DNA of 64,000 nucleotides from contig NC_135762.1 of the NCBI RefSeq assembly GCF_052425735.1, positions 10,974,001 to 11,038,000 on the forward strand, read 5' to 3'. The stretch is from Oculina patagonica (taxonomy: Eukaryota). Shown piece after piece: positions 15,216 through 23,698 of the stretch (positions are counted from its first letter, which is position 1; each line of letters begins with the position of its first letter). A model generated the notes under the pieces. That model searched no databases, had not been told where the DNA came from, and worked only from the letters and a program-made list of their open reading frames with translations. A program made the translations under genes and the position numbers.

Positions 15216-18200
15216 CTAAGCAATCCCATAGCATTTTAACTTTCCCAATGTGTGAAAGCCTATCTCTACCCTTGGATCACCCGTGTCACCAAAACGGAGC
15301 TGCGTCACCGGCAGTTTTGACTTGTCAGTCAACAGTCCACTGTCCTCACGCCACGTCATGTCATTGGCATCGCAGTTACACGCCCCGCCTGTTGCGCACG
15401 AGTCGTTCATTCCGCACGCGCACATGTCAGTCTTAGGAGAAGCTCCTCCCCAATACGTCATCTTCTCTCCGTCACGCGACACCCACCAGCCGTAACGCAA
15501 TCCTTCCCACAGGAGCACCGAGTGATGACATTCGTATTTAATGAACTGTTCGCAATGGGTTGAAGCTTGAATGAGGTGTGTGATCTGAGCCAAGGTAACG
15601 CCGTCGTAAATCAGATTTTTCATATAGCTCCCAGGAGACATGTATCCTTTAACAATGGTCCTTTGCTCCGAGTTGTGACTGACCAGTGACACCCCCACGC
15701 CACCCTTATCAGTCATATTGCAACGCACTTTGAAGGTCGGTGAATCTTTATCTGGTTTAACATCGAAAACACCGCTGCGATTATAACCCGCTAATCTTAA
15801 CTCACTGCACGATCTTGCATGTACTGTTAACACAGAGCTGGCGTTTATGGTAGCAACCTCGCTTTTCGCCGCGCAAGTATACAACCCGCCATCGTGAAAA
15901 GAAGTGATATTTATCATCAGAGTGCCGTTGCGCAAAATCTTGTGAGCTTTCGGCATAGCAGTGCCTTGCTTAGACCAAGTAACAGTACCACTGGTTGCTT
16001 GGCACAGAAGCGAAACCTTGCCGCCAACATAAGTCATAAACTGCGCGGCTGGGTGGGTGAGAAACTTTAGTTTAGGGAGTACAGAAATGTGCGCGAAAGC
16101 TTTGACTTCATTCACGTCATTTTTCGCAGTGCAAGTGTACCTGTCGCTGTCTTCTAAGCTAGCATTGCTGATGGTGAGCCGTCCCTTGACAGATGTCTCC
16201 GCGTGCATGCGCCCCCTCGCGGATGACGCTGTCCAATTGATCGCGGGTTCAGGAAATCCAGACGCTTCGCAGGTCAGCGTTGCGTTTTGTCCTTCCTCGA
16301 TCTTTACGGGATGTGGTTTCTTTGTAAATCGAACGGGAACTAGACAGATAAAAAGGATGTGTCATAGTTTTAGTATGTGTGGCTTCTTACAATGCGCCTT
16401 TTCTACTCTCCAATATGTGATCGGTTTTCATTGTTCAAGTGGCCTCGGTTACAACGTATAGGTGTACAGTTGAATCCCGATAACTCGAACCCTCAGTAAC
16501 TCGAACCTTTTTCGATTTCCCTTCAGGTCATTTTCTTACTAATTTTACCCTCGATAACTCGAACTCCCGACATCTCGAACCTATTTCGATTTCCTTGAAG
16601 GTTCGAGTTATCGGGATTGAACTGTATTCCTAATTAAAGTATACAAAAGGAATTATTCAGGGCAAGCAGACTTAAACCTTTTTATTGAACCGAGAATTGA
16701 GATGTTTTTATTAATAAGGTTTAACAAAAGCAAGAGAGTTACTCATACCATGAACAATCAACAAAATGGTTGATTTCGTAATTCCCAGAACATTCTTAGC
16801 CTGACACACGTACATTCCAGCGTCCTTGTGCAGTGTTCCACTTATAACCATCGTACCATTGTTATGTATCACGTGACGACCGCCGGGTAAAGACCCGTAG
16901 ATTCGGTCCCAGGTTGTCTTTGGTGTAGGGAGTCCTTCGGCTTTGCACGGTAACGAGGTTGTGTGTGTCTCTTGGACTGTTACCACTTTTGATGGTGTAG
17001 TGATTGTAGGAATGGAAACAGAGATGCCCGGATCACCTGGAACAATAACATAAAGCAAACGAAAAGGAACAAAAGAAAATATGTTGATAATTCGAATTAA
17101 TAAGTTGACACTGGCTAAAAATATTGTTTTTGGACGTTTCGGCCACTACTGTTGCCTTCTTCAGCAAGATAAAAATGTAAATGTTCAACGGCATTTTAAC
17201 AGGACGCCGTTAGCCAGTGTCAACTTATTAATTCGAATTTTTAACATGCCTGGCTACAACCCGAACATTTTTAAAATATGTTGATGCCTGTAAGCGTCGT
17301 AAGCACGGTACTGGAGAGGGTCACAAATGTAAGCTATTAGGCGCGAACCTGTATAGAATGACTTATTTAGATGGAAGGAATGCTCATATGTAAAGTTTTG
17401 TTAGCAAAGCAGGAGGATTTACCATCACAGGGCGTGTCACAGGAAGAATGATACATCCCTGAGAATATTAAACTTTAATATTTCTATTTATATTTCATTC
17501 CACGTTTCTATAAGGTTTGTTTCTTATATCGGGGGGTTCTTACATTGAGGAGACAAGAGGCGCAGTGACACTAGGAATTGATTGGTCTGGGTTGGAGCGC
17601 TGGTGCACTGTGTCCGGAGTGTAGACATAATCTTCACAGAGAGGTAGTTTGTGGCTCGTAATCCGTCTTAATCTTCGTCAGTCGAAACAATCCTTGTTTA
17701 TTTTCGGGGGTTTTATTTCTCCTTTGGTGTTTATCTACCTTGGAAAACTATTATTTTCAGGTTTTCCTACAATTTGAAAGTAGTCTGAAAAATGACTTAA
17801 AATACCGTGACTGACATATCTCCTTTAAATCGACTTACCTTTTTGTCCTTTCGGGCCTAAAGGTCCAATCAGACCTTTTTCGCCACGAATTCCTTGAGGA
17901 CCTGAATCGCCTTTATCTCCTTTTGGACCTCCAAAACAAAGTCTCTCTTCTTCTGCACAAAACACTTGATTTAACGATCCTATCATTGTGCGAATCTCAT
18001 TCTTTATTTCCAGTTTTATCTTGCGATTGATGCCTTTCTTGCTCTTGCCACTTGTCTTCGACTCGTTGCCTGTCCCCAGATCTCTAGCAAACCTTCTCTG
18101 CGGATCTTTAGGCTTGGTTTCCTGTAACTTCTCTGTGTGATCAAATCAAGGAATAATTTTAAACGTACAAGTCTTAAGAAGCTGATAGTTTGCGGCGATT

Positions 18201-19468
18201 TATTCATACTGAACCGAAGAATCACGCTGGCTACTTCTAAGTGAAAACTTTTTTAATTTTCTAACTGATACTTTTAAAATAGGGTTTCACCAATGTTTTA
18301 CACTTTTTAGATTTTAGTTCTTTCTTCCATTTTGTATTCTTTTTTTTTTCTTGCTTGAGAAGGGCCATCATGTAAACTTCGTTCAATAAAGTCTTTTTTT
18401 GTAATGCCAAGTAAGGGCTTGACCTCGTCATCCTTAATGACAACTGTCAAACGACGGGAAATTTTAACTGGCAAATTAGAAACGACACCAGTTTTTTCAG
18501 CTGGCAGTGGAAATGTATACCTCTCTATGATCCAGGATCTATAAATAACACTTTTTTGAAACAAAAAGACACACAGCACAAAGTCCATGGCTCGCAGCTT
18601 GTAAATCATTTAATTCTCAATCAGCATTGATTGAGTCCTAAATTCTCACAACTTTTTATGTAAAACTAAAGAGGCAGTTCACGAGAATCAAGCACTTGAA
18701 CATCTCACTCAACCCGCCCAAAATTCTCTCCAAATTGCATAGTTATAGAGTAAAAAAGCCACCCTTTTGGCGTTGTTTTTTCCATTAGATATTACTTTTT
18801 CAGGCAATCTTGTTCTGCTTCAAATTATTGTATAAGATCTAAGGAGAATTGGAAGAACAGAAGAGAATGTTCGTGTTTAGGCACAGTTGTAATCTAAAAC
18901 TGTTATAGAGGTGTCCGTATTTTTGAGAAAGAATTTACAAATTTCGGTCTCTTTGGTCCCTGTGATCCACACTTACTTAATTTTTTCGGTCAGATCCCCT
19001 AGCTATATCATCGGCTCTGTGTTTGTAAGTACAGAAAAAGGTCTTCAAATGACGTCACAGCATAATCACAAACTAGAACACTGGGATAGCTCCTGTATTT
19101 ACCTCGAGGCCAACATCTACTACTAGTTATCCGGAAAAAAGAAATGGCGTATGAAAAACCGGGACGATATTTATCAGTTCATTCTGATAAAGCAGCATAA
19201 GGAAAGGACGTGTATCTGTATCATTCTTTACAATCGAACTCTTCACTGAGATGCATGAAATCGAAGAAGAATTGTTTTTCTACTTACCAGGCGTACGGAG
19301 GAAATCTTGGATAGCCTGTTCCTTTGAAAGCTGAATCTCCAGTTCTTCAATTCTTCCACGGATAAGAAACAACTCGGCGGTATTGGTGTTAGATCTTATA
19401 AGAGTTGCTACAGAAAGCAACAACGCCAAAACACTCAGAGCAAAGGAGAAGCTTTGAAACGCATCCAT
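15216..19468 (-). CDS. Signal-anchor / furin site / short collagen / 3x Ig / Caspr(CNTNAP)-type fibrinogen-like domain protein, paralogue A, ~628 aa
   Basis: Exons 19288-19468, 17839-18132, 16749-17036 and 15216-16339, all phase-1 GT-AG introns, 1887 nt in frame. Contains hydrophobic FSFALSVLALLLSVATLI, RRFAR, 11 Gly-X-Y triplets, three Ig domains (DAGMYVC, DSDRYTC, DGGLYTC) and the C-terminal SCSEL...CEQFIKYEC...WWVSRDG...YWGG...CACG...CNCDAND...LPVTQLRFGD typical of the Caspr/neurexin-IV FBG-like domain. Confidence 0.88.
16467..16624. mobile_element. Tc1/mariner(pogo/Tigger)-like MITE in intron 3 of paralogue A
   Basis: TIRs CAGTTGAATCCCGATAACTCGAACC ... GGTTCGAGTTATCGGGATTGAACTG, TA on both sides, internal AACTCGAAC sub-repeats. 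Confidence 0.8.
17089..17272. mobile_element. Penelope-like element remnant (inverted pseudo-LTR plus tail)
   Basis: 13-bp direct repeat AAAATATGTTGAT at 17076-17088 and 17273-17285. Perfect 30-bp inverted repeat 17089-17118 / 17210-17239, a 33-bp unpaired tail, and a hammerhead core inside. Confidence 0.7.
17128..17168 (-). ncRNA. Minimal type-I hammerhead ribozyme-like motif
   Basis: Minus strand reads TTG-CTGAAGA-A-GGC-AACAGTAGTG-GCC-GAAA-CG-TC-CAA. It has the CUGANGA and GAAA boxes, a short stem II, a palindromic minimal stem III and stem I TTG/CAA. Confidence 0.6.
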
Positions 19469-23200: not shown

Positions 23201-23698
23201 TTGACTACTTTATTTCCTCACCTAAATCTATTTACACTAAAATCATATCATACTCACTTATGAGCTAATGTAATTGAAAATCGCGTGCCTTGTTTAAAGG
23301 GGTGGGTGTTTTGTAGGGTTTGAAAAAGAAAAAAAATTTAATTAGACACTTTGTATCTCATTTATTGGAGTCTGTTTCGCGTGCAAATAAAGCAGCTAAT
23401 AATAGACAAGACAGTGTGCGCCAGACAAGAGGTAGAGAGAAAAAGAAAGCGTACAGAAACGACAAGAAAGTCGAAGCTGAAACTAACAGAACAATAGGGT
23501 TTTAGCTGCCAACAACCTAGATAAAGAATAACTTTTCATCATGTGCTCAAGTGCTATCATAACGGTACCTGAATCAGCCAGACGTTCAAGTAATTCTACT
23601 CGCTCGTACAATTGACGACGTTCTTGTAACATCACCAAAGCCAAAACGAGGCAAAACGTGAGAGCTGCGACGGAAATAAATGTGGCAATCTTAGACAT
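20289..23698 (-). CDS. Signal-anchor / furin site / short collagen / 3x Ig / Caspr-type fibrinogen-like domain protein, paralogue B; carries one +1 frameshift (pseudogene or assembly error)
   Basis: Exons 23569-23698, 22376-22666, 21869-22165 and 20289-21431 have the same phase-1 structure as paralogue A. The sum is 1861 nt (3n+1). The frame breaks near 21241-21265 inside Ig2 (..GKVEFRRIQL / DDSGLYTC). RHRARR site and 13 collagen triplets, one with Gly replaced by Ser. Confidence 0.82.

Follow-up and report, generated by a model that had tools for sequence, protein, structure and literature searches.

Tandem CniFL genes with a Caspr-type head in the coral Oculina patagonica

Two neighboring genes on the minus strand of a 64,000-nucleotide stretch of the Oculina patagonica genome (NCBI RefSeq assembly GCF_052425735.1, contig NC_135762.1, positions 10,974,001 to 11,038,000 of the forward strand; hereafter the window) are members of the cnidarian ficolin-like protein (CniFL) family, which was named in 2015 and characterized in silico in 2016. 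Both genes, which we call A and B, are transcribed and spliced, and their tandem arrangement is conserved, with both genes under purifying selection. Each encodes a hydrophobic N-terminal segment, a convertase-type site, paired cysteines, a short collagen stalk, three immunoglobulin (Ig) domains, and a C-terminal head. Structural modeling indicates that this head has the fold of Caspr proteins and procollagen C-propeptides, and not that of the fibrinogen-related domain (FReD) of ficolins. We consider it reasonably probable that A and B yield anchored, trimeric proteins that are released by a convertase and bind multivalently to an invariant partner.

Results

Gene models and transcripts

Six-frame translation and inspection of exon borders resolve the interval 15216-23698 into two minus-strand neighbor genes. 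A first-pass annotation, made from the sequence alone, had set the ends of this interval exactly at the stop codon of A (15216) and the ATG of B (23698), and had proposed an identical four-exon structure with every intron in phase 1 for two divergent paralogs. Indeed, all six introns (three per gene) are bounded by GT..AG and all six are in phase 1. The encoded proteins are 42% identical. The two genes are real, and the earlier description of their layout is good with regard to domains, exons, and motifs. It overlooked a break in the reading frame of B exon 4, which is taken up below, and overall we regard that observation as partly confirmed.

Contigs from four public sequencing runs (X1, X5, X10, and X12, of which X1 is DNA and X12 is RNA) were placed on positions 16701-22700. 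X12 record 17 (1372 nt) covers 16749-17034, 17837-18132, and 19288-19503 without a break, and so joins exons 3, 2, and 1 of gene A, with junctions at 16749/17837 and 18132/19288. The same record runs on for another 574 nt past exon 3, leaving that exon at its predicted donor. In gene A, the exons for the anchor, the collagen, and the first Ig domain are therefore spliced to one another at the predicted borders, as the first-pass annotation had anticipated. For gene B this expectation is borne out in part. X12 record 20 (1477 nt) joins exon 4 to exon 3 (21431/21869), a joint also seen in X10, and thereby links the first Ig exon to the last exon, but the junction between the collagen and the first Ig domain has no direct support. 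The 5′ end of record 20 holds 71 nt that were placed neither on the adjoining intron nor on the window's exon 2 of B, perhaps owing to haplotype differences, and X12 record 21 contains the start of B exon 2 followed by 72 nt beyond the matched stretch.

Membership in the CniFL family

CniFLs were defined by the Pfam combination of Collagen, Ig, and Fibrinogen (van der Burg et al., 2016; PMC5094078), in an article that credits the name to the 2015 Aiptasia genome paper (Baumgarten et al.). Passages of that article describe a layout of N-terminal transmembrane domain, collagen, Ig domains (usually three), and C-terminal 'fibrinogen' head, with the transmembrane domain called in most members on the basis of TMHMM, and hypothesize a role in the lectin-complement pathway. 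The order of parts in A and B is the same, with the hydrophobic N-terminal segment as the candidate transmembrane domain.

The trimmed alignment published with the family (PMC5094078, supplement 5) contains two types of head. Most members (Nv, At, Av, Ab, and Adi2-5) carry canonical FReD motifs (CA..GGWW), whereas five sequences (Adi_CniFL1, Ap_CniFL1-3, and Cp_CniFL3) carry F.V[FY]C[DN]M[ST]DKGG and [AG]WWVSRD, which is the head type of A and B. The head of Adi_CniFL1 also has CNCDANDLTW. When compared by eye, on the trimmed published alignment and without a scored alignment, Adi_CniFL1 and gene A share SL.CKA.GLP.P..TWD, AGMYVCQA.N.LG..KST..L.V, FCNMTDKGG, YGWWVSRDG.KM, and CNCDAND.TW. Because lineage-specific motifs of the first Ig domain (AGMYVCQA and GLP.P..TWD) are among those shared, Adi_CniFL1 is probably the Acropora ortholog of A. 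The CniFL passages and supplement that were searched make no mention of two head types, a convertase site, or a MASP-like motif. What goes beyond the published passages is the fold of the head, the absence from A and B of the collagen motif PGKHGP (see Discussion), and the conserved tandem pair.

A Caspr-type head behind three Ig domains

Pfam recognizes three I-set domains in each protein, in agreement with the first-pass annotation, and finds no discoidin, laminin-G, EGF, or olfactomedin domain; its matches are confined to Collagen, Ig, and weak COLFI or Fibrinogen_C. Specifically, the COLFI match reaches 17.4 bits (PF01410, cutoff 26.2; exon 4 residues 173-361), the head of A reaches 16.6 bits with PF00147 (cutoff 22), and the head of B has no Pfam match to PF00147. 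A profile search of solved structures by sequence returns weak COLFI matches and weak matches to the N-terminal part of FReDs, and no Caspr chain.

An AlphaFold model of the A head (mean predicted local distance difference test score, pLDDT, of 93) matches the fibrinogen-like (FBG-like) domain of Caspr1, Caspr2, CNTNAP-like proteins, and Drosophila neurexin-4 among reviewed proteins, with template modeling (TM) scores of 0.87-0.89, a root-mean-square deviation of about 2 Å, and 33-36% identity. The next matches are axotactin and NLR-1, followed by fibrillar collagen C-propeptides at a TM score of about 0.64. Among solved structures, the C-propeptide trimers of procollagens I and III rank best (TM 0.57-0.64, E about 5e-9; PDB 4ae2 and 5k31). 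Ficolin-type FReDs align only partially, with TM scores of 0.27-0.33. The model thus agrees with both earlier claims about the head, namely its Caspr/neurexin-IV identity and its likeness to the fold of fibrillar collagen C-propeptides. The heads of A and B are 53% identical, and an alignment of 35 head sequences contains ten invariant cysteines.

Anchor, convertase site, cysteines, and collagen

A hydrophobic segment of 21-22 uncharged residues, preceded by only 2-3 residues that would form a cytoplasmic tail, is kept in both genes in three corals: the window, the locus L001 from another coral, and L002, a scaffold from the Tara coral metagenomes. In A, an amphipathic helix about two heptads long comes next. 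Over 19397-19411, within the anchor of A, five of 15 bases in an X12 RNA contig are not those of the window; these differences have no counterpart in the X1 DNA run, and therefore represent allelic variation.

The furin-type sites and cysteine pairs listed by the first-pass annotation are present and are kept in orthologs. The site of A, RRFAR, is unchanged in L001 and reads RRFSR both in L002 and in the Stylophora protein P0010, and that of B, RHRARR, is unchanged in L001 and reads RRAKR in L002. These RxxR and RxRR sites lie 46-51 residues upstream of the collagen, and in A a Lys-rich helix separates RRFAR from the CX6C pair. A comparison set of 21 relatives with an N-terminal part, taken from other corals and anemones, shows the same arrangement: R-x-[KR]-R lies 41-46 residues before the start of the collagen in 19, the exceptions being Stylophora P0010 (RxxR only, RRFSR) and P0090 (no site), and two cysteines fall within 45 residues before the collagen in all 21. 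If RxxR is also accepted, every sampled paralog that reaches that far, except P0090, has a site 40-50 residues before the collagen. We regard such a site, at a constant spacing from the collagen, as a feature of the whole family. A Lys-rich N-terminus with a hydrophobic segment of 19-20 residues is visible only in the longest models (Stylophora P0042 and Porites P0048), and many public models begin at an internal Met.

The collagen of A has 12 uninterrupted Gly-X-Y triplets and scores 20 bits with the Pfam Collagen family (PF01391), below its cutoff of 27.2 bits. Together with the 13 triplets of B, this agrees with the 11-13 triplets counted earlier, except that the run in B is broken once by a Gly-to-Ser change (GER-SEP, 22421-22404; residue 129, 22412-22410). 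The corresponding triplets are unbroken in the L001 and L002 orthologs. Over this place, an X1 DNA contig has a single difference from the window.

A homotrimer model of the A exon-2 peptide passes its controls, scoring 0.50 versus 0.00 for the best control; of proteins with solved structures, 21 of 30 pairs and none of 23 single chains reach the mark used for such models. Contact agreement between runs is at least 64%, and partner pLDDT is at least 59. The confident interface consists of the cysteine pair and the collagen only (residues 66-97 of the peptide). The first-pass annotation had also called a short coiled coil. The amphipathic helix is there, but its pairing is not borne out, with the model's confident interface lying elsewhere; the trimer model makes no confident contacts between the furin site and the cysteine pair, a result that is not counted against a coiled coil.

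Conservation and relatives

The order B then A is repeated in L001 and in two Tara coral-metagenome scaffolds (L002 and L003), and all of these loci retain the anchor, basic site, cysteine pair, collagen, Ig domains, and head. L001 has about 87% amino acid identity to the window, at a synonymous divergence (dS) of about 0.3. The ratio of nonsynonymous to synonymous divergence (dN/dS) between the window and L001 is 0.18 for A, whose head is its most constrained part (0.09), and 0.21 for B.

In a tree of head sequences, A groups with Stylophora and three more orthologs (support 100/99), and B falls in a long-branched clade of its own with P0036 and P0040 (support 100/100). Both clades stand apart from those sampled from large arrays. 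The assembly holds at least 150 copies of the head; there are 390 candidates, and all 150 that were scored are below E 1e-56. Of these copies, 74 of 150 lie in open frames of at least 320 amino acids, fitting an exon for two Ig domains and a head, and the remainder lie in open frames of 210-290 amino acids, which suggests other architectures. The copies form tandem arrays on sequences C4, C13, C14, C6, C8, and C1 of the assembly. Genes of the C4 array have three exons, with collagen and the first Ig domain fused in one exon, unlike A and B. P0112, an Oculina patagonica protein from NCBI, aligns to C4 in two exons at 99%.

Relatives of 600-650 amino acids with the same domain order are found in Stylophora, Porites, Montipora, and Oculina. 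As the first-pass annotation foresaw, automatic pipelines mislabel them, with names such as 'contactin-associated protein-like 2', 'peroxidasin homolog', and 'roundabout homolog 3-like'. Truncation adds to the confusion: the model of Stylophora P0010, one of the proteins named 'contactin-associated protein-like 2', begins at an internal Met (MRQNIKNLEIQ) and has lost the anchor exon, and in L002 (5085-5288) a hydrophobic anchor lies upstream in the same exon as that internal start. Two apparent leads in the coral literature were set aside. The skeletal-matrix 'contactin-associated protein / neurexin' has laminin-G domains and is therefore a different protein, and mentions of 'peroxidasin homolog' in coral papers are not informative on genes of the CniFL type.

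Table 1. Coordinates of genes A and B and their parts in the window, and places of head arrays in the assembly
Feature	Position	Strand	Remarks
Gene A	15216..19468	-	CniFL, Acropora Adi_CniFL1 ortholog group (probable); 628 aa
Gene A exons	19468-19288, 18132-17839, 17036-16749, 16339-15216	-	Splice sites, frames, RNA contig
A hydrophobic segment	19397..19468	-	Signal anchor or signal peptide; residues 1-24, of which A3-I24 (22 residues) are uncharged
A convertase-type site RRFAR (RxxR)	18083..18097	-	Residues 73-77
A CX6C pair	17936..17959	-	Residues 119-126, directly before collagen
A collagen, exon 2 part	17839..17929	-	Residues 129-159; continues past intron 2 into 17036-17026
A Ig1 (I-set), exon 3	16750..17010	-	Pfam I-set E 1.9e-13
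A Ig2 and Ig3 (I-set), start of exon 4	15816..16339	-	Pfam I-set E 1.2e-27, two stretches
A Caspr/neurexin-IV-type FBG-like head	15219..15815	-	Residues 430-628; 10 conserved Cys
Gene B	20289..23698	-	Divergent CniFL paralog; 619 aa with extra base set aside
Gene B exons	23698-23569, 22666-22376, 22165-21869, 21431-20289	-	Splice sites, frames, RNA contigs
B hydrophobic segment	23627..23698	-	Residues 1-24
B furin motif RHRARR (consensus R-A-R-R)	22632..22649	-	Residues 50-55
B CX6C pairs (two)	22598-22575, 22523-22500	-	Motif inspection
B collagen, exon 2	22376..22493	-	13 triplets; Pfam Collagen 28.6 bits
B Ig1-Ig3	22139-21870 (exon 3), 21431-20898 (exon 4)	-	Pfam I-set E 3.4e-19, 2.4e-6, 2.2e-14
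B extra base in window	21241..21249	-	Near 21249; in-frame TGA 21243-21241 inside Ig2
B Caspr-type FBG-like head	20292..20894	-	Residues 419-619; all invariant Cys kept
Head-array places	C4:10.8-11.95 Mb, 20.34-20.43 Mb, 59.8-60.3 Mb; C13:6.3-7.1 Mb; C14:23.1-24.1 Mb

Discussion

Comparison with known architectures

Ficolins resemble A and B in having an N-terminal Cys, a short collagen stalk, and a C-terminal head of the fibrinogen superfold, with a trimeric bouquet presumed. They differ in that A and B place three Ig domains between stalk and head, match the FReD only partially, and begin with a putative anchor and a convertase-type site where ficolins have a plain signal peptide. Mollusc FREPs likewise have Ig domains followed by a head of the fibrinogen superfold, and form expanded families that are treated as immune recognition molecules, but they have neither collagen stalk nor anchor, and their head is a canonical FReD. 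Caspr/CNTNAP/neurexin-IV proteins share the head domain itself. They are about 1300 amino acids long and combine discoidin, laminin-G, and EGF domains with an anchor at the C-terminus; none of these three domain types was found by Pfam in A or B. The likeness to fibrillar procollagen C-propeptides is one of fold, and in A and B three Ig domains separate the head from the short helix.

The MACIT collagens XIII, XXIII, and XXV, gliomedin and other colmedins, and ectodysplasin resemble A and B in their layout of anchor, juxtamembrane helix, furin-type site, and collagenous trimer, of which the anchor and the trimer are predictions in A and B. However, there is no sequence relation, the collagen of A and B is far shorter, and neither an olfactomedin nor a TNF head is present; the term 'colmedin-like' used by the first-pass annotation is thus an analogy of layout only. 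For MACIT collagens, passages of a published account (PMC4678570) report that furin shedding is proven, at a site that is also juxtamembrane, trace the family to the bilaterian common ancestor, and name as its defining features a largely collagenous ectodomain and a conserved stretch of 34 C-terminal residues. A and B instead have one run of 12-13 triplets and end in a globular head of 200 residues.

A proposed route to a multivalent ligand

The sections above show how the genes are built and spliced, which domains they encode, how the head folds, to which family they belong, and that they are conserved under purifying selection. We hypothesize a course of events that goes further, and whose membrane topology, cleavage, trimer state, shedding, ligand, and function draw on the anatomy of the proteins and on analogy with proven cases. 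The N-terminal segment of 21-22 residues would bring the protein into the secretory pathway, most likely as an uncleaved type II anchor of the kind published for CniFLs. The short collagen stalk would then trimerize and be locked by the CX6C pair just upstream. A furin-like convertase would probably cut at the RxxR or RxRR site, leaving a soluble or pericellular trimer as the mature product. In such a trimer, each of the three arms would consist of three Ig domains and a Caspr-type head, and the heads would bind their target multivalently. The ligand that we favor for A and B is a conserved invariant partner, which might be a self molecule of the matrix or cell surface or an invariant microbial pattern; complement activation coupled to MASP is not favored for this pair. 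The earlier view of a trimeric, furin-released recognition molecule is therefore plausible, at the level of the collagen trimer model and of the conserved RxxR sites.

Several points weigh against this proposal. Cleavage at RxxR is predicted from the motif, and in A the motif is the minimal one, without a basic residue at P2. There is also a plausible signal-peptidase site in A (S-V-A before T22), and if it is used, cleavage at RxxR would amount to removal of a propeptide rather than shedding of an ectodomain. The trimer score may stem from the model's memory of collagen helices, and the modeled trimer does not include the helix after the furin site. In B, the collagen carries the Gly-to-Ser break, and the copy of exon 4 in the window is frameshifted, with the change of frame inside the second Ig domain. 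A low dN/dS by itself does not identify a ligand. Finally, the published induction of CniFLs by Vibrio and their higher expression in aposymbiotic Aiptasia, as reported in passages of the two studies (PMC7654579 and PMC4840205), point to immunity over a self ligand.

The latter observations favor a different role, which we judge unlikely for A and B, as ficolin-like lectins that recognize glycans of microbes or symbionts and, through MASP bound to the collagen stalk, trigger the lectin complement pathway. The family was named for the likeness of its collagen and 'fibrinogen' parts to ficolins, and is hypothesized to act through the lectin pathway (PMC5094078). Moreover, passages of the expression studies report that CniFLs rise together with lectin-pathway genes in Vibrio-infected Exaiptasia (Seneca et al.; PMC7654579) and are expressed at higher levels in aposymbiotic Aiptasia (Poole et al., 2016; PMC4840205), although these data concern sea-anemone genes rather than A and B. 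With the ficolin MASP motif taken as defined in a passage of an earlier report (PMC2856262), a similar motif, PGKHGP, is present in all 20 relatives with a full N-terminus outside the ortholog group of A (including P0031, P0035, P0041, P0042, P0048, and P0076), whereas no Gly-Lys occurs in the collagen of A, B, or their L001 and L002 orthologs, where every Lys is in the Y position. PGKHGP thus sets the A/B pair apart from the rest of the full-length relatives sampled, among them members of the large arrays. Because Gly-Lys is absent, the modeled head is far closer to Caspr than to the canonical FReD, and constraint is strong, the ficolin/complement model is doubtful for A and B, and it may yet apply to the array genes.

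It is also improbable, in our estimation, that A and B remain membrane-bound and act at the cell surface, as receptors or adhesion molecules of type II topology, with the RxxR site unused or used only under regulation, by analogy with Caspr binding to Ig-superfamily partners. The hydrophobic segment, kept in three corals with almost no tail, would suit such a protein, as would the TMHMM-based calls in most CniFLs given in passages of the family's description (PMC5094078) and the minimal nature of the site in A. However, nearly all sampled paralogs keep a basic convertase motif equally far from the collagen, which argues that the site is used, and a tail of 2-3 residues gives no capacity for signaling.

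A bolder version of the released-trimer proposal, to which we assign rather little probability, holds that CniFLs with Caspr-type heads are a separate class of shed trimeric ligands. In this scheme, A and B, as a conserved single-copy pair, would bind an endogenous partner of the Ig superfamily or the matrix, in an interaction anciently related to the Caspr-contactin type, and the arrays with PGKHGP would have been recruited later for variable recognition coupled to MASP.

Reading frame of gene B

Alignment to the orthologous locus L001 shows that the window has one base more in B exon 4 (Table 1). X5 lacks the base at 21249 at its full depth (84.7/84.7), and X1 lacks it at half of its depth (17.1/32.9). 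The remaining X1 depth comes from a second haplotype, distinguished by six substitutions. This haplotype is the one transcribed in X12, whose contig is net 1 nt shorter than the window across B exon 4. The X10 contig ends at 21248, just before this position. Because none of the three runs that span 21249 (X1, X5, and X12) has the window's sequence, and because the orthologs in L001 and L002/L003 have an uninterrupted exon 4, the extra base is probably an artifact of assembly or of haplotype consensus. A small intron in place of the frameshift was considered and rejected, as the only GT..AG candidate is 23 nt long.

These data bear on whether B might be a decaying pseudogene in Oculina patagonica, with a real null allele. 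The extra base and the TGA that follows it, together with the broken triplets that L001 and L002 do not share, could be taken in this sense. Yet none of the covering runs shows the window's sequence, B is transcribed and spliced, and its dN/dS to L001 is low with no further stop, so we regard a pseudogene as very unlikely.

Naming and use of the family

The first-pass annotation's view of an undescribed and unnamed family of colmedin-like shed collagens, and thus of the best candidate for an undescribed system in the window, is almost certainly wrong: no Pfam architecture name exists, automatic names mislead, and the searched passages of the Nematostella matrisome paper contain no architecture of the A/B type, but CniFL has had a name since 2015 and an in silico study since 2016, with the same layout, and its published alignment includes both this head type and the probable ortholog of A.

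CniFLs are candidate receptors of anthozoan innate immunity, and work on the family has to date been limited to in silico and expression studies. 'Ficolin-like' misdescribes the head of the A/B branch, which includes the original Aiptasia genes, and public gene models, such as Stylophora P0010, mislabel or truncate members of the family. The type of head, the convertase site, and the split in PGKHGP could guide experiments on coral immunity and symbiosis.

Additional observations

Intron 2 of A contains two high-copy repeats. About 197 bp (17076-17272) are missing from an X5 contig, with a joint at 17075->17273 that has 13 shared letters, which look like a target-site duplication; the segment is a very high-copy repeat (word depth 45,000-59,000). 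The second repeat (17501-17900; word depth 6,000-25,000) has variable joints and many loose ends in each of the four runs. About 9 kb beyond the ortholog of A in L001, an open frame (20114-20371) encodes a homeodomain.

The Caspr-type head also occurs in other settings. In Oculina P0020 and in P0021 from the octocoral Dendronephthya, it appears twice in tandem after PAN/EGF-like parts, without collagen or Ig domains. A protein of 486 amino acids from Lissotriton helveticus (P0046, 'neurexin-4-like') combines an SRCR domain with two tandem Caspr-type heads that are about 45% identical to the coral head. Its source record is a chromosome of 2.1 Gb, and it would be a vertebrate protein with this head outside the known Caspr family, or else contamination.

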